Shown here piece by piece: positions 9,476 to 55,699 of a DNA stretch of 64,000 nt. The translations under genes were made by a program, and so were the position numbers. The stretch's first letter is position 1, and the number at the start of each line of letters is the position of its first letter. Source of the DNA: Vicugna vicugna (taxonomy: Eukaryota); NCBI GenBank assembly GCA_013265495.1, contig MU062811.1:4125462-4189461 (forward strand). The letters run 5' to 3'. The notes beneath the pieces are model-generated. The model saw nothing but the letters and a program-made list of their open reading frames with translations, was not told the origin of the DNA and ran no database searches.

Positions 9476-11918
<2,443 letters not shown>

Positions 11919-39201: not shown

Positions 39202-42200
39202 ATGTCCGAGAGGCGAACGCGGTCCGGAGGGGCCGCCCAGTGCTCCGGTGAGCAGAGGGCGCGCGGGAGGGATGGGGTTGAACCGTTTGAGGGACGCTGT
39301 CCTGTGAGGAAGGCCCTCCCCTCACTACACTAGGAGGCTTGTCCCCTCCACTGGGAAGGCGCCCCCAAAGGGCCTGTTAGGGACCTTCTCTCGCTCTCTC
39401 CAGAACCTGTTCTCTAGACTCTGAGGTCCAGAGTGCTCCCCTACCTCGTAAGTTTTTCTCCTTCCAGAGCCCAAGGCCCCAACTCCCACTCAGTCTTTGC
39501 GGAGGTCCCAGCGGAAATCAGGCTCTGATCTCCCAAGCACCCTCCCGGAAATCTGGCCTAAGGTGAGCCCTGCGTTCCTCAGTTCCTCCTGCCCATGGGG
39601 TCCCTGGACTAATATAGAGCTCATGTTCACCCCTTTTCTCCAGGCACCCCAAGAGGCTCCAATCAGAAAGCCCATCGTCTTGAAGAAGATCGTGGCACAT
39701 ACTGTAGAGGTGAGGGCTGAGAGAGGGGTTGTAGGTGGGGAGCCAAAATTGGGGGCCAGCTCTGTGTTTAATTGGTGTTGTCTCCGCAGACCCCATCTGT
39801 TCAGTCGCCTCGAAGGAGCCCCAGGGTAAGTTCATTTTCATCTGCTTAGTTGATGGGAATCCAGGGCACTCTAGAGCTGGGGCGGGACATAATGGCTACT
39901 TACATCTACCCAGGGAGCTGTTTTTGTTGTATTTTGAAATAATTTGCCTTTGGACACCTGCATGTACTGCCTGTCTTGCTTGCTTCCTGCAGATTTAGTA
40001 CATTTAGCTATTGATGTCCTAGTATTCCCTGCTGTTTTTCTTTGAAAGTTGAGCTGTGTCTTAATTACTCTTTCTTCTTTCTGGTCTATTATTTTAGTTT
40101 TTACTTATGGAATTGCAGTGTTCTTAACTGTTAGCAGAAGTTACTAAGGATGTTTCATTGACAAGATCTGTGCCTGAAGCTATAATGAAAGAGAAGATAT
40201 AATGAATGCCTTTGAAGAGCTCATGGGGCTTACAGTCAAATGAGGAGAAAGACGAATAAGTGATAACAACCTAGTGTGCTGAGAACTGTAATAAGGAGAC
40301 TACTAGATGCTGTGGAGGCACCTAACCCAGACCAGATGGCTCAGGGAATATTTCACAGAAGAAGTATTTAAACTGAATCTTTAAAGGCAGGCTGTGTTTG
40401 CAGAGTCCACAAGGAAAAGCCCAAGGTTTGGGAACAGCAGCTTGTTTGGTGTGTCTGCAGCAGACCTTGTCAGGGCAAGGGAGTGTGCTGAGCCAGACCA
40501 GATCCTGATGAGGCATGAAAGCCACGCTTAGGAGTTTGGACTTCATCCTTGGTTCTGTGGGCAGCTTTGGAGAGCCTTAAGCAAGGTAGTGACTGAGGCA
40601 AGCTTGGATGTTTTAGAAAGATCCCTCTTGGGTCTGGGTGGAGGATGTGTTGGAGAAAGCCTCTTGGGGACCCCAAAACCAGGTACGAGGACTTGAAAGG
40701 AATCCTGAAGTGAGATGGTGGGAGCCCGGAGTAAGGTAAAGGCAGAGTGCTGCTCCTCACCCCATCACACAGGACTTAGCTCAAAGAACACCTCCTAGAA
40801 ACATTCCGGATATAGTTCTCCACAGGCTTGATGAATAGCAGAGAGTATTTTGTTTGCATGTTTGTTGTCTTGAGGACAGGGACTTCTGCCTCCCCTGTGG
40901 TGGCCACTCTTTCTTGGCTGAATGATTGTTTGATGAAATAATAAGCCAAAAAGCTGCGTGCTTGGCTGTAGGGGAAGAAGTAGTTGGGTGACACCCAACT
41001 ACTTTTGTTCAGCATCCCTTTTACTAGGTTAAGAGTAATAGGGCAGATTTCTCAGAGCCTGTAGCCAGATGTCTCTCTTAATAACCAATACAATTCTATT
41101 AGACCACAATAGAGGTCACTGAATTTATCCCACTTCTCACCTTGTCTTGGCTGTCAGAAAGCTCAGTGCCAAGTTTGTGTAAGTTAATCCGGTGAGCATC
41201 TGTTGAATACCTGCTCCTTGCAGGGCCCTACTGAAGGTGCTGGGCGTAGGCGAGAACCAGACAGATGAAGCGCACGTTCTGATTGGGGTGACAGTCAACC
41301 AGTGAGCAGCCAAAATCAGGTAGTGATGGTTGCTGTCCAGGAAAGAGGTCATTGTGACGGAGGGTAACAAGCAGAGGTGAAGGGGGGCTGGTCTCTACTC
41401 CAAGGTGAGGGATGGCCTCCCTGAGGGAACAGTATTTGAACTGAGATTAGACTTAAGAGGAGCCAGTACATGGACCTCTTAGTACGCATGTCAGATTAAG
41501 CACTTTCCTGTTCATAACCTTGCCATGGCTCCCTGGGTCTCAGAGCAAGGGTCTCCCCTTACAGTGGCCTACCAAAACGCCTTAGAACATGCCCATTACC
41601 TCCCAAACCACCTTCAGTTCCTCTTCTCACTTTAGCCACACTGGCCTTCCTGTTCCTTGACAGTGACTGTCATAGTTGCACCTCAGGACCTTTGTACCTT
41701 CTGTTTGCTCTGCCTAGAACATTTCTTCTCCAGATGACTTATTCCCTCACCTCCTTCAAGTCATAGCTCAGATGCTACCTCAGTGGGGCCTACATTGATG
41801 TATACCTGCTTAAAATTCCAAACCACCCCCAAGTATGCTCTAGGCTCCTGTTTTTCTCCAAAAGAGAACTTAGCATCTCTAACGGACAACATGATTTCTA
41901 TTGCCTCTTTTCCCTGCTAGAGTGGAAGCTCCACGAAGACAGGGGTTCTCTCTGTTTTTTTCCCTGCTGTACTCCCAGTGCCCAGGACAGGGCCTGGCAG
42001 GTGACCCATACGTACTTACTGACTGGATGGAGATTTTAGGAAAATCATCTCCAGCTGTGTGGCAAATGGACCGGAGCAGGAAGGGGCAGGGAGGAGGGTA
42101 TTGAAAGGGTCTAGAGGACAGGTGATGGGGGCTTGCTCCAGTGACGGATGGTTAGGGTTCAGTCACATTTTGGGGACAGACCTGATAGCGTCGGGGATGG

Positions 42201-43111
42201 TGGCCAGTCTTCTTGTGTCACAACAGTGGACTCAGAAGCCATGACTGACTGGTCTCTTCCCCTCCCCACATCTGTCTCAGTGCCTAACTTGTTTCCACTT
42301 TCCCTTTTAAAAGTGTCCTGTGGGTCTGTCTTTCTGCCCTACATCTCCTTGGGCCTTTCTGAGAGTAACACAGCTAGGTAACAGGGAGGCATTCTCTCTT
42401 CCATCTTGGTACAGATTGCTTTTCTCTTGGAGAAAGAAAACAACCCTTCCAGCAAGAAGCCTGCAAGGGAAGACCTCTTCCAGACATGCAGCGTCCCTGT
42501 CACCCCCACCCCCACTCCTGTGCTCTGCTCTATTAGTGTTGAGTCCAACTCCGGAGAAGGAGACCTGGACGCCAGAGACTTGGAAATGTCGAAGAAAGTC
42601 AGGCGATCCTATAGCCGTCTGGAGACTCTTGGCTCTGCCTCCACCTCCACCCCTGGCCGCCGGTCCTGCTTTGGCTTTGAGGGGCTGCTGGCGGCAGAAG
42701 ACTTGGCTGGAGTCTCACCGGTGGTGTGTTCAAAGTTAACCGAGGTCCCCAGGGTCCCTGCGAAGCCCTGGGCCCCAGACATGACTCTTCCTGGAATCTC
42801 CCCGCCGGTCATAAAAGAGAAGCGAAAGAAGAAGAAGGTGCCTGAAATCTTGGTGAGTGAGGGGCAGGGCCTTCCTCTGCGGACACGCCAGACACACCAG
42901 ACACTCACAGGGCCGGGGCTCAGCTCTGGTTTTTATGAGGGAAAGGCAGCGCCTGCAGACCATAGGTGGAGACATTCCAGCCAACATGCCCCCTTCCCCA
43001 CTCACCTGCCCCCCATTTCTCTTCCCCCAGAAATCGGAGCTGGATGAGTGGGCCGCGGCCATGAATGCTGAGTTTGAAGCTGCTGAGCAGTTTGATCTCC
43101 TGGTTGAATGA
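39202..43111 (+). CDS. CDCA5: Sororin (cohesin stabiliser), 253 aa
   Basis: Exons 39202-39247, 39468-39562, 39644-39709, 39790-39825, 42415-42852 and 43031-43111 sum to 762 nt. KEN box (LEKENN), FGF motif (RSCFGFEGLL), ends ELDEWAAAMNAEFEAAEQFDLLVE*. AATAAA at 43988-43993. Confidence 0.98.
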
Positions 43112-46100
43112 GATGAGATGGGGATGCACCTGGCCAGACTCTTCTCCTCCCCCTGTACATAGTCCCCTCTACCTGTGGAGAAGACTCTCAGGGTCCCCTC
43201 CCCTGGCCTTGTTACCCACCACCGTGCTGTTGCTGCACAGGAGGCCTGTCCTCCTCCCAGGGCTTGTGTGGTAGCCACAGCCGTCTCAGCTTCAGGAAAG
43301 GGGGCCCGGCCTGCCTGGCCCAGCCATGCACTGGTGTCCTTTCTGTAGTCGGTGACCCACTACCCTCTCCTCCCTGCCTCCCAGAGTATCCCAGTTGGTT
43401 TCCAGTTGGGCCACAGACTAGGGAGTCAGAATCACTGGCCCAGCCCGAGGAGGTTAAAGGGCGGGGGGTTGTGGGTGAGAGAGCACCTCCGCCCTTGTTG
43501 GGAAACATGGCTGCTCTGCACCAGCTCCACCAGAAACGAATGCCGAGGGCCACAGCCAGCCTTGCCCTTTCTCTTCTGAGTTGCCTTCTGTTCCCTGTCA
43601 TGATCCTCTCAAGGTATCAAGGCTTGGGTTTCCTCATAGATTCTGTGGCTGGTCTAGGAGGACATGTCCCCATGGATTGCAAACAGTCTATCTGAGGGAG
43701 AAGCTGGACATTCAGTCTATAGGGTCTTAGGTTTTGAAGGATAGAGGGAAGCCTTGGCTGGGTCTCAAACGTAAATGTTTACTGCAGAGAAGCTGTGTTT
43801 TATAGTCTGTTCTGCTGTTGAGGTGTTCGGTTAAATGCCAGGCTGATGGGGCACTGGCTGCTTGGGGCAAAGAAGGTGTCTCCAGATGCCACTGAACCTG
43901 AGGCTCAGGGCACTGGGACTGGAGGCCCGCAGGGGGCCGGGAAGGGGTACGCTCCTGTCACTTATACCTGTTTTTTTTTTTTAACAAAATAAAGTGTACA
44001 GAGTCTACTCAGCTATAGAAGAATAACTTAGGGTTTGGATGGTCTTGATGGTGATCTAGCATTTTGCAGCTACACTTGTAAATTTCTAAGAAGCTTTTCT
44101 CGCGTGCCAGAAAGGGGCTGTGGTTAATAGCAGTTTTAGCTTTCAGCTTCCTTAGTGTCCTCTCACACGAGGACATTGCCCTGAGGTAGGTGCTCAGAGT
44201 TGAATGGGGCAGAGCGGTGGTCGTTCTCTGGGGAACCCTGCTCCCCTACCCTCTGCTTCTTGTTCCTCAATGTTGTTAAAAAGTGAGCCTTCAAAGGCTT
44301 CCCAGCCACAGCTTCCGCCAGAGCCCAGGCCATTGTGCCTTTTGACATTTACAGGTTCGTGGACGTGGAGGCTAAGAGGAGTGTAGAGGGGCTGGTGGAC
44401 AGCAGAGAACATCAGGGAAAATAAGCGCTTCCTCGGTTAGGGCACCTGAAATGCTTGGGCCTGATGGCACTAATTAAACTCTTTGCAAGGCTGAAGGGTC
44501 CCAGGCTACCTGTTGAACGCTTCGTGCTTTGTCAAATCCTGCAAGCAAGCCCGTTTACCAGGGTGGGCCCAGATGCCTTTGGGCTGTCCTCACCAGCTGG
44601 CAGGACAACTCCCAGGAAACAGTCCTGTAGAACTGGAAGTCACCAAATGATGTTGGGTTGATTTCATTATCACAAACTTCTCTCTGTCCCTGAAAAAGTA
44701 AGAATGGAGTTTAAGAGAAAACAGGTTTCTTTTTTAAATTAAAAAAGAAAACCTGATTAAAGAATTATTGCCTGTTCAGAGAGTGTTTCTTTTGTTGGGT
44801 CAAAGGCAGAGCTGATGGTGTGGGGCCCAAGAGCCACACTTTCTTTTGGCTGTGTCACCAGGCTTGTCCCTTTGTACCGAGGGCTGCCAGCCTGACCTCC
44901 AGAAGCCCTGCAGTAGGTCACTCCCACCTGTCCAGTCACTGTACCCACTCCAAGGCAGGGCTGGAGGAAAGAAGTCGGGGCTGGGGTGAGGCTGCTAAGA
45001 GCTTTGCTCAGTACCTGGAAACCAATCTGCACACCACCCCAATTCCAGCCCTTGCTCCCCGGCCCCGTCTCCCTGTCAGACTCCTGCTAAGGGACCGATG
45101 TTTCACACGGGCCCAACCTGGATGCTCCCCAGCACTGAGTGCAGAACCCCTGGGGAGCTAGTCAGAGGTGCAGATTCCCAGGAATTCTCTTCCTCTCCCT
45201 CGCATCCTCTATGCTTGTCCTTGCCTCCTAGTCCTTAGAGCAGATCAAGGTCTTTAAATTCTCCCTAAGCCTCCCCACCTTTACCTCCTTCCCTTACCCA
45301 GAGGAGAGGGGGCTCCTCTTTTCAAGACCAAGCTTTCCATTTTGGCTTTTGATCCAGTTCTCATCTCTGAGATGCCTCTTTCTCCTACAAGTCTTAAACA
45401 GGCTTATGTTCATTTAATTGTTGAAAACAACCACCTTAATCCTAATCCAAAAAAAATCTTATCCAGCATGTTTTCATCTACTGCTATTAATGTCTTTCAA
45501 GATTAACCCCTTTGAAATAATGTCCAAAGGTTCTCTGCTTCCTTTCAATTTACTCTGGGTGCCCTCATCACTCCATTTACTGCTTGGACAAAAGTAACCA
45601 GCGGCCCCCCTAATGACCAATGCTACAGACTCAGGCCTCTGCAGCCTGGGCTGAGAACACGCTTCTTGGGGCCGTAGTACTGGTGGCCCCTCTTTCTTGG
45701 CTTCCCCTGAAATACCAGCACACCCACGTTCAGTCCTGGATCCTCTTTTCAATCTCCTTGCTCTTTGTGGGTCACCTCCTTGCTCAAGACTTGCTAGTCT
45801 CTATCTCCAAACCATACCTCTCTCCTGAGCTTCAAACCAGAATCTAGGACTGTCTTTTAGAACTGTATCCCACCCCAGAAGTCATCTCAAATTCAGCTCA
45901 TCCACCAGCTTGCCTCTTCCTGTGCTCCCTCTGCCATTATCACCACCACCAGCTGACCCAGTCCCACCACCCAGGGACCTGGGGTCATATGCACCTCTAC
46001 CCTCTCTCTCACCCCATTCTGTCAGCCCCAACCTCCTCCACATCCCTCCATCCCTGAGGCCACTGGACAGTTGCCCTGGCCTCCTAACGAGTCTCCTTCC

Positions 46101-47520: not shown

Positions 47521-47667
47521 AGCGAGGAGGGTATAGCTCAAGTGGTAGAGCGCATGCCTAGCGTGCACAAGGTCCTGGGTTCAATCCCCAGTACCTCCTC
47601 TAAAAAAAAAATAAACATAATTACCTTCCCCCCTCAAAAACAAACAAACAAAAAAAGCAATTAAAAA
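47521..47667 (+). mobile_element. tRNA-Ala-derived SINE (Vic-1-like, camelid), copy 1
   Basis: Head GGGTATAGCTCAAGTGGTAGAGCGC...GGTTCAATCCCCAGTACCTCC with A and B boxes, then an A-rich tail. Perfect 17-bp TSD AATAATAGGACAAATTT at 47504-47520 and 47668-47684. Confidence 0.92.
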
Positions 47668-48118: not shown

Positions 48119-49866
48119 GCATGGTACACTGCACATGGAGCACAGACAGACCGTGTGAGGTCTGCTTTGGTGGTGTGACAGCGTCTCATGTGCGCCTTGC
48201 CCGATATTAAGATAGTGTAGACCCTTTCTTGCACAGCAGTTGTATGTGCTTCTCTCCTTCATTCCCAAGACCTTGGGCTTCTGCCCCCAGTCTCTTCCTC
48301 CCATCCATCTTCCCAGCTACGGCCCCAACAACCCACATGGAGAAACAACCAAAGGTCTCCCTTGCCTCCTTGTCACCTGGGAACCACAGCCCAGGCCTGC
48401 TCAGCTTGGATCTCAGTGGGAGCACCCCACACCTGAACATGCCAAGCCAATCAGCACCATCCTGCCCAAACCATTCCCTCTTCTGGATTCCCCTTCTTCC
48501 TTCTCTGGCCAGGATACCTGACTTGTTGAAGATTGAGTAGTCCCTTCTTGGTGGAGTCTTTCTGGAGCTCCTAAGCCAAGTGGCTCTCTCATCTTGCTGC
48601 CAGAGCTTTCTCTGCAAGTGTCTGTATTGGCACATCTCCCAGCACTGGTCACCTGTGACCATCCCCGTACCCCATTCACTACAGAGTGGACTGTATTCTA
48701 TTACGTTCATAAGTCACTGTTTACTTACTTTTTCTTATATTTGGGCCCTTTAGGCCGGTTCCAGTTTTTCTTCTTGGTGTGAATCATCTGCTGTGGATCT
48801 CTGGGTGAATTATTTTTACTACCTTTGGAGTTGTTTCTTTAGCCCTAGTTTCCAAAGCAAAGTTAACAGGACAAAGTTCTGGCTAGTTTTGTAGACCTTG
48901 CTATATGTTGCCGCATCCCTCTGGGACAGATCAAAGCCAGTGACAGAGCTCCCAGCTTCTGAGAATCGGTTCCACCCTGAAGCTCAGTGCGTGCCCAGGG
49001 TGACAGGCCCTCTGCAGGGCACTGCAGGCCACGGAGATTCTGCTTATGTCACATGGACAGGAACCATGATATTTTTAAGTTATCTGGAAAGGTTCAATGT
49101 GATGCAGAGAGCACACTGCATACAATTCCTGCCGCAACCCACAGGGCTGTCAGAAGCCCAGGTGGAGCTCAGTGTGAAGAAGGACACATCTGAGGTCACT
49201 ATTTGTTCTCTAATTGGATTGCCGTCCATCGTTTGGCCAGCAAATGGACAAGATTCTGAAAAATCTCACAGTGCAAAATGATAACAATTTCATCTATTGA
49301 CTTAAGACTTTCTGTGACTTGTGGAGAAGCTTCTATTTCAAGCCTGCTCGGTGGAACATCTTATACCACCTGGTAGAGACAGAAGCATCCTCAGGCTCAG
49401 CCCAGCTCTGGCTCCTCTGCAGACCTGCCCAAGGGGGTCCTGGGGAGGCGCTGCCTTGGCTCAGCAGAGAAAAGAGTGACCAGGTTCAGATTGCAAAGTG
49501 GGGAGGGAATGGGAGAAGGGTGAACTGTATAGGTAAGAGTACAGCAGAGGGGACGGCTGGGACGGTGCTGGGAAGTGAAGCTCATGGCCCAGTATGAGCA
49601 GGGGCTTATTCAAGGACGGCGGAATATTAGGTGGGTTAGAAACAAGGGTGTCCACAAGTTGAGGGTCTTGAATGGCACACTCTTTGCTTCTCAATGTACA
49701 ATTGATAGATGACTTCTACACCAAAAATTGGAGAGATTCTCTACTTTCTTATAAGTTTCTCTAGGATTCCTTTAAATAGTGCCAACCCAGCCCTCCCAGA
49801 CCCCAACCCCACCTCCTTGCATCTCTGGGGGTTCGTTTACCAAATATCACTAGCAGGTAGCTTTGG

Positions 49867-50058
49867 TAGGGTTGCCAGGTAAAATACAGGATACCCAGTG
49901 AAATTTGAATTTAGATGAAAAATAAATACTTTTTAAAGTATAAGTCTATCCTGTGCAATGTTTGGGATCGACTTATGCTAAAAAGTGATTCACTGTTTAC
50001 CTGAAATTCTAATTTCTCTGGGTGTCCTATATTTTGTTTGCTAAATCTGATAGCCCTA
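49867..50058. mobile_element. MER53-like palindromic hAT MITE, near full length
   Basis: Begins TAGGGTTGCCAG and ends CTGATAGCCCTA. The two halves are imperfect reverse complements around a central loop. Family assigned from memory of the consensus. Confidence 0.8.
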
Positions 50059-50243
50059 ACTTTAAGCCCCCCAGGCACTGGGGAGATGGGTGGCAGCCCA
50101 GGTTCAAAGGGCTGGTTTACTGCACAGAGCTGGTGGTGGAGATTCTCGAGGCTGGAGGCTGCCCCAGGAAAACCAGAGGCTAGAAAGGGGAGGCCAATGG
50201 GACGGGGGATGTGGCTCATCAACCAAGTTTCTATCTCCCTCAG

Positions 50244-52425
50244 TCTCCCAGGGGCGGACGAAGGGCCCACTCCAAGCCTGAGGAGAAGCCCGTGCGGCAG
50301 CCTGTTGAGAAGCAGAAGCCAGAAGACCCTCAGGTCTCTAGGGAGCCAGGCACAGAGGTAACAGGAAGCCCCAGGACCTCCCAAGGCAGAGGGCCAGGAT
50401 GGCAGGAGGGCTGGAGAAATTCTTCTTCTGCCTGGATGGAGATCTGAACCCCCAGCCATTGCACCCCACCATCTTGCTATTGGGTGTGGGAGGACCCAGC
50501 TCCTGGGCAGCCAGCCTCATGCCCCTTCAGTCACCACGACACCCTCTCTGCCAAAGCCACCTTCTTCAGATTCTTCAGAGCAAAAGCTGGGCCTCCAAGA
50601 GGAAGCCACCATCACGTTCCTGTTTACACTCCTGAGCACAGCAGAGCCCACCAAAGACCCTGAAGAGTAAGGCTGTGTGTGCATGTGTGAGGGTGTGAAG
50701 AGGAATGGGGCACAGAGTGCTTCTCCCTGACCATCACCATTCAGACCTGGGCTAGGACTCAGCCCTGGGGTGTGCAGGGACATGGCTAAGATAGGACTGA
50801 GGAAGCCTCAACCTCGGGCTGGGTCCCCGCTCTGCCCACCCTACCCCTGCCCCAGTCTCTAGACTGGTCCAACCCTCATTGCCCACCCACCCCAGGGACT
50901 TGGAGAGCCAGGCGTGCCGGTTCCTGGATAAGGAAGACTGGGGCCCCCAGCGGACCTCGAAGGAAATGAGCCATTTGCAGAATATTTGCCAGAGGTGAGC
51001 TGGGCAGGAGCAGGTGGGGACAGGTAGGAGGGGGAATGAGGACAGGTAGGGTGGAGCTCTGTGGAGGTCAAGGACTGGGGCTTGACAGCTGTGGGTTTGC
51101 ACCTTCACTCAGCCTTGGTCTTCCCCTCCTTCCCTTGCCTTCTGTCTGTTCTACTCTGGATGACGTCCTTGCTGGCCAATCAGTCCCTTCCCTCCCCAGC
51201 ATCGGTGTCCTTGTATGTGAGCAGGAATGGAGGCCACAGCTCTTTCCCATCAGTGCGCCCACCTGCCTGGATAGTGGGCCGTCTATAGGCTGCCTAGAAG
51301 GGACCCCATCTTTAATTGTCCAAGAACCTGAGGGGTAGTTTGGTCTGTGGGGAAGTGGCAGGGAGGGTCTGTTCTCCGCATGTCAGACTCTGGACATTAG
51401 GTCTGCACAATCCCATGGTCGCTTGCCTGTCTGAGGCAATACTAGGGTCAGATCTCCACCTGGTGACAGAGGTCTTGGGATGGGGGGGGTGTGACATCAT
51501 TCCCCAAAGGCTGCACATGGCTCCCATGGCCATGGAGCTGTGTGGTTGGCACTTCCATTCATCCACAGCTGACCCAGCCGCTCCGGCAGGGCTAGTTCCA
51601 CACAGTTCCACACGGAAACCACCCAGAACCTGTCACAGCCCCCACTGAAGCCCAGAGGGGTGGGGTGGCCAGCCCTATAGGCTGCCTTAGAGGATTCCTA
51701 TCCAAGCATATGCGATGAAGTCACCTGCTCTTCTCTGGCTAAAGAAGAAGAAAAGCACAGTTCGGCTCTGTGCGGTCCCCTGCTGCGGGTCACGTGGGGA
51801 GATCAATTCCCTCCCTGCCTGTGGCTTCCCCAGAGCCAGCCTGAGCTCTTGGTGAAACCCTGGGCTCCTGGCTGGTGCCAGATCCTGCAGCTCATGCAAG
51901 AGCTGTGTGTTGGGGGTGGGGGTGAGGGCTGACTAGGACAAGCTCCTGGGGGCTGAGCAGAGGGTCTCTTTTTCAACTCTAGGCTTCGGGAGTCCCTGAG
52001 TACCATCCAAGCAGACAACCTGGCCCTGGGGGAGAAGCTGCAAGACCTGGTGAGAGCCTCAGTCTAGGACCCTCTTCTTCACTGTGCCTCCTCCCTGTCT
52101 CCTGGACCAGCTCCTGTGCTGGCAGTCCTGCCTGAGGTTGGCTACTCACCTCTGGCCCCTGCAACCCTTTTTTCCAGCCTAACTCTTTGTACGAGAGCCT
52201 GAAGGAGGAAGCAAAGGCCATCCTAGATGGAGAGAGGGCCATCCAGGAGGAAGGGAAGGACACCCAGGAGGGAGCCCAGGCCTTCCAAGAGGGGGCGCTG
52301 TTCCAGGTACACAGACCTCCACCCAGGGGTGCATGGGGCGAGAGGACAGCATGCCCAGCCACTGACTCGGCTCCCCTTGCCTGCAGCCGCCCAGTTCCCA
52401 GAAGGATGAGCTGGCCATCCTGTAG
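50244..52425 (+). CDS. Unassigned multi-exon protein-coding gene candidate with a leucine zipper; 5' end unresolved
   Basis: Exons 50531-50666, 50896-50994, 51983-52049, 52178-52306 and 52387-52425 are all AG/GT-bounded and phase-compatible, giving 156 aa without internal stops (VTTTPSLPK...DLESQACRFLDKEDWGPQRTSKEMSHLQNICQRLRESLSTIQADNLALGEKLQDLPNSLYESLKEEAKAIL...KDELAIL*). Candidate upstream exon 50244-50357. AGTAAA at 52543-52548. Confidence 0.7.
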
Positions 52426-53392
52426 CCTGATGCTCCCCACAACCACGGAAACCAGTGGCAGCCCTGGCTGGGCCCGAGGCTGGAGACAGGTGGCCTCCTC
52501 AGGAAGCCATTCCATCCTAGCAGCTATGCTCTAGGTCCCAGCAGTAAACGTCTCTGCAGCTGAGCCATGGCTCCCCTGCCTGTCTGTGGGCCCTGGGACT
52601 CGGGTGGAGCAGCTTGGTCCCTAGGCCATCCTCTGACATCGCCCTACCTCCCTTAGTTTGCTGGCCCTGAGCTTCCCCCACCCCAGAGGAGATTCCTGGT
52701 CTGGCTGGTTATCAGCCTCAAGATCAATGTCTCTGTGATAAGTGCTGGGTTGGGACTGGAAGGGGGCCGCACCCTCCCCTGGGGAGGTTGGAAGCATCGG
52801 GTCTAATTCCAAAGGGCAGAAGACTAGGGAGGGGCCAGAAGAGCCACTTCCCACCTTGTGAACTTGGATGAGTCTTCCCCTTTGTTAGTCAAGTCGTGGG
52901 GTGGGTAATGAGAGCTCCCCTGGAGCCCAACACTCAACATGCTTCAGGCCTGAAGATGCATCTGGAATTTTAATTCCCACCCCCACCTCCAGCGACGGCC
53001 TCCTAGGGCCTCCCTTGAGACCTGCCCCTCTTCACCAATGGGGTTTTCCCTATCCTAAGCCACAGAGCCTCCCCCAACCCCGCTCGTAGGCCCAAGTGTC
53101 CAGCTGTAGTCACTGTGCCCTGGCCACCAATAGGCTCTCAGGACTTGTGCCCATCAGCCTTGCTGCCCTCAGACCCTGTCCAGCCCTGGGGAGCCTTTCT
53201 AGACATCCCATGATTCCTGATGTAACGAGACAGAGACAGAGACATACACATACACAGAGAATGTTTAAGTAGAATATTCAAAAACTTAGAAATAATTCCC
53301 ATATAACTAGACATGCAGCATGCTTTAGACTTTTTTTTAAACTCCCTAATGAGGGGGATGACAGAGCCAGTTTAAAGGGGATACAAGAAACT

Positions 53393-53416
53393 CACACACA
53401 CACACACACACACACA
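53393..53416. repeat. (CA)12 microsatellite
   Basis: Direct read. Confidence 0.9.
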
Positions 53417-55699
53417 CGTATATAGTCAGGGGGGAGGAAGAAGGAATTCTGAAATAAGATTGCTAAATCAGATACAAAATTGGTCAATATCCTATAGAGC
53501 AATTTTTTTCCAAAGACCCAAAACCCCTAGGGTGTATTGTTTACTGGGTAGAATCCTCTGTCATGGAAGAACTGTGCCCATCTTTCTGCTTTATACCCAC
53601 TACAGGGGAACACTAGCCAAGGGGATGGAAATTCAGGTTTGTGGTCCCTCCTCAGACCTGGTCTGACTTATACCGGATCTGCGGGGTCCTGCCCAGGCCA
53701 AAAACTGATGACAGACTTGATTAGTGAAAGTTTGATTTGGTCACAGCTTTAGGCTGCACTGACCTTGGACTGAGCAGCCCTCCTGTCCTAAGACTCCACC
53801 CTCCCCGACTCCAGGTTCCCAGGCATCCCCTACCACCCGCTTCCTGATCGGTTCTTGCCCAGTGGCCTAGCTAACCGGTGACCCAGCTGTACAAATAGCC
53901 ATCTTGCCATTTTCCTGAAGGGAATTATCTGATAGAGAGATTGAGGGGAATAGTTGTCTCCACAGCTAAATGGTTAAATCAATTTAACCACTTAAGGACT
54001 CCTATCAATAAGATACAGTCACTACATGGTCCCATTTGGTAGGTGGCAGTTTTAATAAGCAAAGGATTATCTTGGGCGCTGAAAGACAGTAGTTCTCTGC
54101 ATCCACTTGCCAGAATAATAAAATTTATATAGAGGCCTTAACTGAGTTCAGTCACGTATTCAGTCCAGATGGTCCCAACACCACCTTACTCTCTCAAGGC
54201 CATGTCCTTAAAACAGCTCCTAGGGTGGAGCATACATTCTGAAGGCAGGGGAGGGGGTGAGGAACCCCCAGTTGCCCGGGTGAGCTAGCAGGTCAACTGG
54301 TGGTCACACCCTCTCAGTGCCCTCCTCCAGCAGTGTATAACTAATGCACTTCATATAAACTCATAGGAGCTGAAGCTTCATAGAAGTGGAATTCTACAGT
54401 ATGTTATCTTTTGTGTCTGTCTTCGTTTGTTCATCTTTATGTCTGTGACAGTCATCCATGTTGCTACAGGTAAGAGCATGTAAAAGTAGTCTGTTCTTTT
54501 TATTGCTGTTTAAATATTCCACCATTTATTTAAGAAACAAAACAAACAAAAAAAAACCTTCCTTTAAAAAGCCTCCAGCTTCCCAGCCTAGGAAAGCAAG
54601 CACATGTGCTACATCCACACTGCGCAGCTACAGGGAATGGAGAGGCGACAGGCCCCCAGTTATCAGCCACAAAAGTGCTGCCGGATGTCCCAAGGCATCC
54701 TGGCCACAGCCCAGCAGCCGGGGGCCCCAGCTTCGCCCTGAGCTTAGTTCCTGTCACCACTCCTGTTGACTCTGCACAGTCAGGAAGGCCTTTTGAAGGG
54801 ACAGTCCTGCAGCAAAGCTGTGTGGGTCCCAGGGCATTACCAGGTCTTTTAATTCACAGACACACACACACGCACATGCACACTCACATTTCCCCCAGAA
54901 CTACTAGTCAAAGCAGAACACCGTGTCAGTCACCAGCTGTGCCCAGATCTTCCAGGCCCGCATGTCCTCAAGGCGCTGGGACTGGGGTGGCAGACCAACC
55001 TCTTGTGTCCCCATGGTCCCATCTCTCTTGTGAGGGACAGAATGGGACGCCTCTCTCTTGGCTAGTGAGTCGTGGTACAACCTCAGGTTTGAGGTGGCCC
55101 ATTTCCCTGCATTCTAACCCAGCTTCACCACGAGCCAGCTTCTGTGACCTTAACCAAGGAACTGGACACGCTTCTTCATCTGTAAAATGGGGTTGATCAC
55201 AGCGCTCACCTCAGAGGCTCTTGGGGGGACTGATGATGTAGTGTGAGCCTGGCCAGTTGTCAGCGTTCAGGGATTGGTAGCGATTATTGGCTGACCTGTG
55301 TATCTACCCACATCTTGGACTGGCTTCAGGGGAAGCAAGTTGGGGTACCTCCACTCCCAGCAGGCTCCCCACTCCTGCCCAGCCTAAAAGATCTGCCACT
55401 CCTGCCTGAGAGGGTGGCCGAATCCTGCAGCCGGCAGCGTCACCCTCCCTCCCGGGGCATCATCCTTCAGAAACAGCCTGCTCTGGTGGTCTGTTAGATC
55501 CCACTGCCCCGTCTCATGAGGGCACCTGCGCTGTGCAGGCCCCGCCCAAGGCTGGCACAGCAATCTTGCTGAGGCTTGTTCCGATAGGGGCTGTTTCTCA
55601 GGGATTCTGTGCCCACCTTTTGTGTCCCTTGTGGTGGCCCCAGACACTCCTTAATACCAGACACCAGAGTTGAGGAGCTGTGCTCTTTCAGGTCAGTTT

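Follow-up and report, generated by a model that had tools for sequence, protein, structure and literature searches.

The window analysed is a stretch of 64,000 nucleotides of Vicugna vicugna DNA (contig MU062811.1), and all positions given are those of the window. Just 3' of CDCA5 and on the CDCA5 strand, it holds a spliced gene with six coding pieces (exons A–F). The coding sequence of CDCA5 runs to 43108; lift-over from L003 places the start of NAALADL1 at about 59.5 kb. The following elements were located:

39787–39825, + strand: end of the CDCA5 exon coding ...SPRRSPR; phase-0 donor gtaagt.
42412–42852, + strand: penultimate coding exon of CDCA5, ending ...VPEIL; phase-0 donor gtgagt.
43482–43613, + strand: stretch of the CDCA5 3' UTR corresponding to the 5' coding exon of the Camelus ferus RefSeq model; donor AAG/gtatca.
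49105–49394, + strand: homologue of the upstream first exon of horse (horse RNA contigs, 81% alignment).
50011–50243, + strand: transcribed stretch abutting the exon A acceptor (word sharing with RNA runs).
50244–50357, + strand: exon A, coding, 114 nt, phase 0 at both ends; absent from the first-pass annotation.
50557–50666, + strand: exon B, coding, 110 nt; encodes the conserved FLFTLL helix; exon 1 of the first-pass annotation with its start corrected.
50896–50994, + strand: exon C, coding, 99 nt; carries the FLDKEDWGPQRT motif and the first part of the zipper.
51983–52049, + strand: exon D, coding, 67 nt; carries the heptads of the zipper, core Asn included.
52178–52306, + strand: exon E, coding, 129 nt; E/Q/A-rich helical repeat region of species-variable length.
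52387–52425, + strand: last coding piece; TAG at 52423–52425.
52426–53417, + strand: 3' UTR, minimum extent (at least 1 kb); the RNA contig stops inside a (CA)n run.

Junctions were read from assembled RNA contigs of a related species (Camelus). Two spliced contigs from a Camelus sample (L001 and L002), 97–100% identical to the window, begin at 50243 and 50244, respectively, join 50357 to 50557 and make the joins 50666/50896, 50994/51983, 52049/52178 and 52306/52387, all exact; the window as such is about 97% identical to Camelus ferus. Exon A is bounded by the acceptor tccctcag/T and the donor GAG/gtaaca. The share of the words of the locus that was found in RNA runs was 0.20, approximately the exon-only share (expected: 0.17 for the camel RNA contigs, 0.25 for a transcript of identical sequence, 0.46 for the whole locus with introns). 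The RNA samples with the transcript are labelled reproductive-system; the transcript was found in other studies too. A canonical AATAAA next occurs at 54117 and may serve as the poly(A) signal.

The first-pass annotation had proposed a real spliced protein-coding gene of five blocks with AG/GT boundaries, an open chain of codons, a CTGAC motif 5' of the last acceptor and no CpG island; the blocks with their boundaries, a chain of 155 open codons and the motif, about 20 nt 5' of that acceptor, are present in the sequence, CpG o/e is ≤0.35 across 49000–51000, and its four predicted junctions coincide exactly with the joins of L001 and L002. Its model was corrected at three points. RNA and orthologues use the acceptor 50556/50557 in phase 0 and not 50530/50531 with a phase 1 start, so that its first 26 nt and its starting phase were wrong; five exons were incomplete, exon A and transcribed sequence upstream having to be added; and the AGTAAA at 52543 is not the end of the transcript, since an RNA contig runs on to at least 53417.

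The gene corresponds to RefSeq LOC102508993 in C. ferus, where the gene order, with the neighbours typed by Pfam, is identical. Models of it, present in RefSeq for dozens of mammals, carry the label 'uncharacterized LOC' in pig, cattle, seal, sloth, elephant, lemur, rabbit and rodents. For a further group of species, human, orang-utan, dog, cat and baboon among them, these exons are predicted as 3' exons belonging to CDCA5 ('sororin isoform X2/X3'). A profile search of 1.84 billion proteins gave 80 proteins with E ≤ 0.001, 31 of them with E ≤ 1e-30; exon E alone retrieved the family at E 1e-16 to 1e-4. The family spans Laurasiatheria, Xenarthra, Afrotheria, primates, lagomorphs, rodents and Tupaia, with orthologues in all four placental superorders. 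The window locus shares with it the similarity of the core (FLFTLL ... DWGPQRT ... zipper), the location between CDCA5 and NAALADL1, in the orientation of CDCA5, and the exon structure (114, about 110, 99 and 67 nt, GT-AG). Exons of 99 and 67 nt recur in the gene models of seven other species (pig, cattle, sloth, seal, Peromyscus, lemur, C. ferus). Conservation of the exon A acceptor was seen in 10/10 species; the length of this exon is 114 nt in eight, 102 nt in seal and 110 nt in Peromyscus leucopus, and is in frame in all but the last (9/10).

The 94-codon core was found to be under purifying selection: codon-model omega 0.36, 2ΔlnL = 49 against omega = 1, in an analysis that left out the zebra model and to which the whale model contributed fewer codons because exon B is skipped in it. 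Pairwise dN/dS of the core had a median of 0.32 and was below 1 in 35/35 computable pairs; in the 36th pair, window and C. ferus, dS = 0 and the ratio is not computable. On the camelid lineage, a crude parsimony count gave 4 non-synonymous versus 7 synonymous changes in the core (omega about 0.16), and the tail gave omega of about 1.25 (parsimony count).

On these RNA contigs, the exon structure of the orthologues and the purifying selection, the locus is read as the camelid orthologue of an unnamed small-protein gene of placental mammals, transcribed and spliced; a probability of about 0.8 is assigned to this reading.

Sequence 5' of exon A is transcribed: RNA runs X1, X2 and X5 contain 0.60–0.68 of the words of 49950–50243, for which the Camelus ceiling is 0.70 (i.e., 50011–50226). 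The start codon used in pig, cattle, whale and seal (ATG) reads ACG in the window at 50202–50204; an in-frame TAG stands at 50181, 21 nt upstream of it, and out-of-frame ATGs at 50086 and 50197. The conserved ORF is thus without an AUG of its own in the window and in C. ferus, and in an unspliced transcript the AUGs that come first lead into a different frame. Contigs assembled from five horse RNA runs (L012–L016) align to 49105–49398 and are spliced on to the acceptor at 50244; the donor of this upstream exon (49395–49396) is GT in horse, GC in the window and GA in C. ferus, and the in-frame ATG of the horse exon is GTG in the window (49174), the frame then stopping at TGA 49279.

The exon A acceptor is phase-compatible with two CDCA5 donors, both of phase 0 in the window, which makes a fusion with sororin a second possible form of the core. 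That the exons are chiefly alternative 3' terminal exons of CDCA5, with the stand-alone transcript secondary, is considered unlikely, though it is the strongest competitor of the preferred reading; the zipper module would then replace the cohesin-binding Sororin domain or, in the shorter form, everything past exon 3 of CDCA5. RefSeq models join ...MPEIL to the exon A acceptor in human, dog, tree shrew and beaver, and ...RRSPR to it in cat, baboon, Molossus, Peromyscus and Thomomys; three more models, from orang-utan, hyena and mouse lemur, were compared by name, length and Pfam match and agree with the former in these properties. The acceptor is kept in every species compared, camelids, Peromyscus and lemur have their local ATG either lost or in another frame, with the core still constrained, and L001 and L002 both break exactly at the acceptor, as a branch of the assembly graph would cause. 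However, the fusion evidence consists entirely of predicted models, and a join to CDCA5 was seen in none of the assembled RNA contigs. The horse contigs show a local upstream exon spliced to the same acceptor, which explains its conservation without a fusion; the models of pig, cattle, whale and seal begin at a local ATG; the 110-nt exon A of P. leucopus would break the fusion frame; and the sequence 5' of the acceptor is transcribed in camel RNA. It is similarly doubtful that sororin has the zipper module as a second, conserved C-terminus, with CDCA5 exons 1–3 or 1–5 joined to it in frame placental-wide. Such a product would keep the N-terminal part of sororin and, in its long form, the FGF/PDS5-binding part too; if real, it would be the only AUG-initiated route to the constrained core in camelids, which lost every local AUG.

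Distinctly less probable is decay of the camelid gene, i.e., a young unitary pseudogene or non-coding RNA, transcribed and spliced and no longer translated. Four lesions are present in both the window and C. ferus: three are identical (ATG to ACG, the in-frame TAG upstream, CAG to TAG), and the fourth strikes the upstream-exon donor at the same site by different changes (GT to GC in the window, GT to GA in C. ferus). The horse upstream ATG, as given above, is also lost and followed by a stop, and the omega of the tail, about 1.25 on the camelid lineage, likewise speaks for decay. The TAG at 52423–52425 is camelid-specific (CAG in other mammals) and removes a C-terminal tail of about 40 residues; past it the frame is open for 41 more codons to 52548 (the end of the translated stretch), homologous to the tail of the others. 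Against decay, the five internal splice-site pairs and a 185-codon frame are intact in both camelids, which are about 3% diverged, the camelid-lineage changes in the core are mostly synonymous, and in-frame CDCA5 joins would still provide an AUG. Chance open frames with splice-like motifs, favoured by nothing but the short length of each block, may practically be dismissed: camel and horse both have spliced RNA, each of the four placental superorders has orthologues, and omega lies well below 1.

The predicted product consists of a variable disordered N-terminus, the conserved core and a variable E/Q/A-rich helix. The core contains an amphipathic FLFTLL helix, the acidic FLDKEDWGPQRT motif (DWGPQRT) and a leucine zipper in which the d positions of five heptads in a row are L/I and the a positions are C, L, N and L, closed by Pro. 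The a/d columns of the zipper are invariant or nearly so across the family, and so are S96, S98, Q101, A102, D103, N104, D73, W74 and G75. AF2 predicted helices at 33–49, 57–71 and 76–156 (pLDDT >90 over about 80–130). By its heptad pattern, the zipper may dimerise in parallel in the manner of GCN4-type zippers that have an Asn in the core, the AF2 model being of a monomer with pTM 0.32; the invariant residues outside the zipper core (S, S, Q, A and D around the Asn, and the DWG motif) may form a partner-binding surface.

No Pfam relative was found for 22 family members, single exons and members giving generic coiled-coil noise below the cut-offs; no PDB relative was found either, a sequence profile search bringing up, at E of about 1e-3, nothing but designed coiled coils and a single viral stalk. 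The Chibby family (PF14645) reached a protein-atlas score of 0.91 but 148–150 shared features, fewer than the 170 that mark true relatives, and PF14645 was not matched in the Pfam search of the 22 members; Takusan, a coiled-coil look-alike in the protein atlas, fell below the atlas reliability marks. Both were rejected, as was an origin by duplication of CDCA5 (hhalign probability 1.2%, best BLASTP E-value 14).

The gene is already known to annotation, in RefSeq for the sister camelid and dozens of mammals and intact in human models, so that the claim of a discovery fails. The earlier description of it as poorly annotated holds in that it is unnamed and without a described function, and fails in that RefSeq carries it (LOC102508993, the LOC models and the sororin isoforms). 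The suggestion that it was possibly lost in humans is not supported, human, bonobo, orang-utan and baboon models holding an intact ORF. Literature searches on the LOC numbers, 'sororin isoform' and 'Gm550' found no gene name or function in papers; support at the protein level is a single list entry, Gm550, in one mouse microglia-line proteome (PMC12977177). The name Gm550 comes here from one hamster (Phodopus) record. The remaining interest lies in a placental-wide protein under selection that has no name, Pfam family or paper and that predicted in-frame splicing links to CDCA5, whose role in regulating cohesin is well studied. Should the fusion isoforms prove real, cohesin researchers have overlooked a form of sororin that ends in another C-terminal module. 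A small puzzle is that the local start codon was lost repeatedly while the core remains constrained.

Compared with known systems, the closest is C. ferus LOC102508993 (XP_032346412.1, 234 aa), which is the same gene: exons A–F are 97–100% identical, and the stop, the ACG for the start and the place between CDCA5 and NAALADL1 are shared. The RefSeq model differs from the window gene in starting at an ATG 7 nt past the CDCA5 stop, with two introns in the CDCA5 3' UTR leading to exon A; its 5' part is conserved at the protein level in the window at only 84%, and its first intron (GC-AG, without a pyrimidine tract) looks, from its sequence, like a modelling device. The rodent orthologues (Phodopus 'Gm550', Cricetulus LOC118237983, Peromyscus LOC119088375) belong to the same family by profile search and share the core motifs, the zipper and the 99- and 67-nt exons; they differ in having about 50% identity, a shorter exon B, a start at an internal Met (MKPAEP / MQPAEP) and long acidic tails, repetitive in hamsters (AEDTQEK units in Cricetulus, GHPGEST units in Phodopus). 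In the predicted human 'sororin isoform X2/X3' the last approximately 215 residues are the orthologue, with all core motifs kept and 60% identity to the camel product over 166 aa, so the gene was not lost in humans; unlike the window gene, the human model is a fusion in which CDCA5 up to ...MPEIL stands in for the N-terminus of the gene and the Sororin domain at the C-terminus is missing, and its zipper reads VHN in place of ADN.

Sororin (CDCA5) itself is the upstream same-strand neighbour and predicted splice partner, without sequence relationship to the gene: the Pfam sororin domains (Sororin_middle / Sororin_C) had no match on stand-alone members, and PF09666 is confined to the fusion models, within their CDCA5 part. 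In GCN4, L/I at the d positions with a single central Asn at an a position specifies parallel dimers. The window product resembles GCN4-type/bZIP zippers in its L/I at five successive d positions and one central a Asn; bZIP_1, bZIP_2 and bZIP_Maf gave no match at E ≤ 0.1 (Pfam, 22 members). Whereas bZIP proteins carry a basic DNA-binding region before the zipper, the window product has an acidic segment there (EEDLE..FLDKEDWG); on the reading of a zipper dimer with a partner-binding surface, the protein is most likely a dimerising adaptor and not an enzyme or DNA binder.

The unnamed zipper-protein gene located 3' of CDCA5 is real and annotated already, and is uncharacterised. A protein search seeded on its exon E gave P0001 (169 aa), the product of two spliced Logan RNA contigs of Camelus (L001, L002) that encode the C. 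ferus protein exactly; P0001 groups at 90% identity with XP_032346412.1, 'uncharacterized protein LOC102508993 [Camelus ferus]'. The contigs were then aligned to the window, giving six blocks:

50243/4-50357, plus strand, exon A
~50557-50666, plus strand, exon B
50896-50994, plus strand, exon C
51983-52049, plus strand, exon D
52178-52306, plus strand, exon E
52387-53417, plus strand, exon F and 3' UTR

The first-pass annotation had proposed a real, poorly annotated gene of five exons; its reality holds, the C. ferus record LOC102508993 being annotation already in place. The five blocks with AG and GT boundaries are present in the window, as are the open chain (155 codons) and CTGAC (~20 nt 5' of the last acceptor), and the six-block alignment confirms all four junctions between them, so that 4/5 of its junctions were right; 5' exon(s) had been missed, and one acceptor and the 3' end misplaced. 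Exon B, begun at 50531 with a correct donor junction, starts at 50557 (ccaaag/CCACCT, phase 0); the structure was not complete, a further coding exon lying at 50244-50357 (RNA contigs); AGTAAA at 52543 is not the transcript end, because the RNA contig extends at least 1 kb beyond the stop codon. L001 stops in a (CA)n microsatellite of the 3' UTR (53393-53417), and ends only because this run was met; AATAAA at 54117 is a candidate poly(A) signal. In the run index, 0.11-0.20 of the words sampled from 50300-52700 occur in several RNA runs whose labels read reproductive-system samples or 'organism A'; expected shares: 0.17 (camel RNA contigs), 0.25 (identical-sequence transcript, exons and 3' UTR), 0.46 (entire Camelus locus with introns).

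The surroundings of the gene are as follows:

SYVN1, ZNHIT2, VPS51 and CDCA5: genes of the mammalian block in the window
43108, plus strand: end of the CDCA5 CDS
7 kb 3' of the CDCA5 CDS end, same strand as CDCA5: the candidate gene
~59.5 kb, 3' of the candidate gene: NAALADL1 (lift-over from the C. ferus locus)

The C. ferus locus was aligned to the window at 96.5-97.2% identity across 15 kb (Camelus divergence ~3%), which marks the window as camelid and probably South American. A tRNA-derived SINE-like element was seen at ~47540-47660. At the cattle orthologue locus, a 419-aa SAC3_GANP gene model on the opposite strand spans the entire length; this is possibly an over-extended SAC3D1 model.

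Eight annotated family proteins were mapped to their own genomic loci; the 99-nt and 67-nt exons were present in seven species beyond the window (pig, cattle, sloth, seal, Peromyscus, lemur, C. ferus). The dN/dS check proposed in the first pass was run on the conserved core (94 codons): pairwise 0.16-0.60, median 0.32, in 35/35 computable pairs, the 36th (window and C. ferus) being left out as dS = 0; omega 0.36 (GY+F3X4 codon model), with a loss of 24.6 log-likelihood units at omega fixed at 1 (2dlnL = 49). In the tail, and in exon A towards the N-terminus, dN/dS was ~0.6. Purifying selection on the core is moderate, and the ends are free to evolve.

Word-based and exhaustive profile searches, with name look-ups, showed the family to be widespread (80 proteins at E<=0.001, 31 at E<=1e-30), with members in pig, cattle, deer, reindeer, whale, seals, ferret, bear, zebra, rhinoceros, bats, pangolins, sloth, elephant, lemur, titi monkey, baboon, bonobo, rabbit, hare, tree shrew and, among rodents, squirrel, guinea pig, beaver, mole-rats, hamsters and Peromyscus. 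A single hamster record bears the name Gm550, suggesting that mouse Gm550 is the orthologue. In human the family is present only within two predicted models, 'sororin isoform X2' of 441 aa and 'X3' of 439 aa, and their last ~215 residues are 60% identical with the camel product; the suggested loss in humans is therefore excluded. A literature search on the family's LOC numbers and on sororin isoforms found nothing; the sole occurrence of 'Gm550' as a gene in the literature found was the protein list of a mouse microglia-line proteome (PMC12977177).

The exon-A acceptor (tccctcag/T, 50243/50244) is kept in 10/10 species compared; eight have an exon A of 114 nt and seal one of 102 nt, so that the exon is in frame in 9/10. 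The exception is Peromyscus leucopus, at 110 nt, where the frame counted from this acceptor is broken, either by a real 1-nt deletion or by an assembly error; the P. maniculatus model implies 111 nt. The partner of the acceptor differs between RefSeq models:

CDCA5 donor after ...MPEIL: human, dog, tree shrew, beaver; orang-utan, hyena and mouse lemur models matched to this type by name, length and Pfam match
CDCA5 donor after ...RRSPR: cat, baboon, Molossus, Peromyscus, Thomomys
donor within the CDCA5 3' UTR: C. ferus
local upstream exon: zebra, sloth (the sloth model joins 10 nt 5' of the conserved acceptor)

Since the window CDCA5 donors (39825/gtaagt, 42852/gtgagt) and the acceptor are all phase 0, either fusion would keep the reading frame. 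The first codon of the C. ferus model is an ATG 7 nt past the CDCA5 stop (window 43118-43613; 10001-10496 of the C. ferus locus L003); its GC-AG intron, which has a purine-rich acceptor and lacks a pyrimidine tract, looks like a device giving the model an ATG, not a real intron. A reading of the locus as CDCA5 exons only is opposed by horse RNA contigs from five runs, in which a local upstream exon (homologue of window 49105-49394, with an in-frame ATG in horse) is spliced to the same acceptor; this explains the conservation of the acceptor and shows an independent promoter. An independent gene, also readable as CDCA5 3' exons, is rated above CDCA5 exons only.

At 50202-50204, where models of pig, cattle, whale and seal have their start ATG, the window and C. 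ferus have ACG, 3' of an in-frame TAG (50181-50183). The horse upstream ATG is GTG at the window homologue, and a TGA follows at 49279; at the upstream-exon donor (49395-49396), GT is replaced by GC in the window and by GA in C. ferus. The stop TAG at 52423-52425 is a camelid change from CAG that removes a conserved tail of ~40 residues; the 41 further codons translated past it are open and still resemble the tail of other mammals. Despite these lesions the core ORF and all core splice sites are intact in both. The local start is absent or out of frame also in Peromyscus and lemur, and in zebra the first of its two Mets is absent. The words just 5' of the exon-A acceptor are present in RNA runs at 0.60-0.68, near the Camelus maximum of 0.70, and this stretch is therefore transcribed, as would be expected with the upstream donor lost. 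Each of the two camel contigs breaks precisely at the acceptor, which suggests that those samples contain a spliced form as well. In an unspliced camelid transcript the AUGs met first (50086, 50197) begin the +1 frame, which spans the whole of exon A and, after splicing, ~28 codons of exon B, and would compete with the conserved frame. By parsimony, in a crude count with a bias towards conserved columns, the core has 4 non-synonymous and 7 synonymous changes on the camelid lineage (omega ~0.16; tail ~1.25). The core thus looks still constrained though no local AUG reaches it, which makes translation from another start, e.g., from a non-AUG codon or through fusion to CDCA5, plausible.

Points of agreement between the family alignment and the AF2 model (pTM 0.32; pLDDT >90 at ~residues 80-130) are:

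N-terminus: disordered, variable
around FLFTLL..EP: short conserved helix
within FLDKEDWGPQRT: acidic stretch with invariant D-W-G
C-terminal to the acidic stretch: single long helix

The first part of the long helix (L-x6-L-x6-I-x6-L-x6-L; a positions C, L, N, L; Pro at the end) is a predicted leucine zipper with a central core Asn, spanning the exon C/D junction and built from both exons. Its surface residues around the Asn (S, S, Q, A, D) hardly vary, and this speaks for a specific partner surface. The protein would form a parallel dimer acting as an adaptor. Pfam matched no family, and a search for solved structural relatives found none. No basic region was found before the zipper, and identity as a bZIP factor was rejected for this reason. 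Profile comparison revealed no homology between the family and sororin, and the likeness of P0001 68-78 (FLDKEDWGPQR) to the KEN-box stretch of human sororin 85-95 (FLEKENEPPGR; 6/11 identical, E 1.4) is therefore probably chance.
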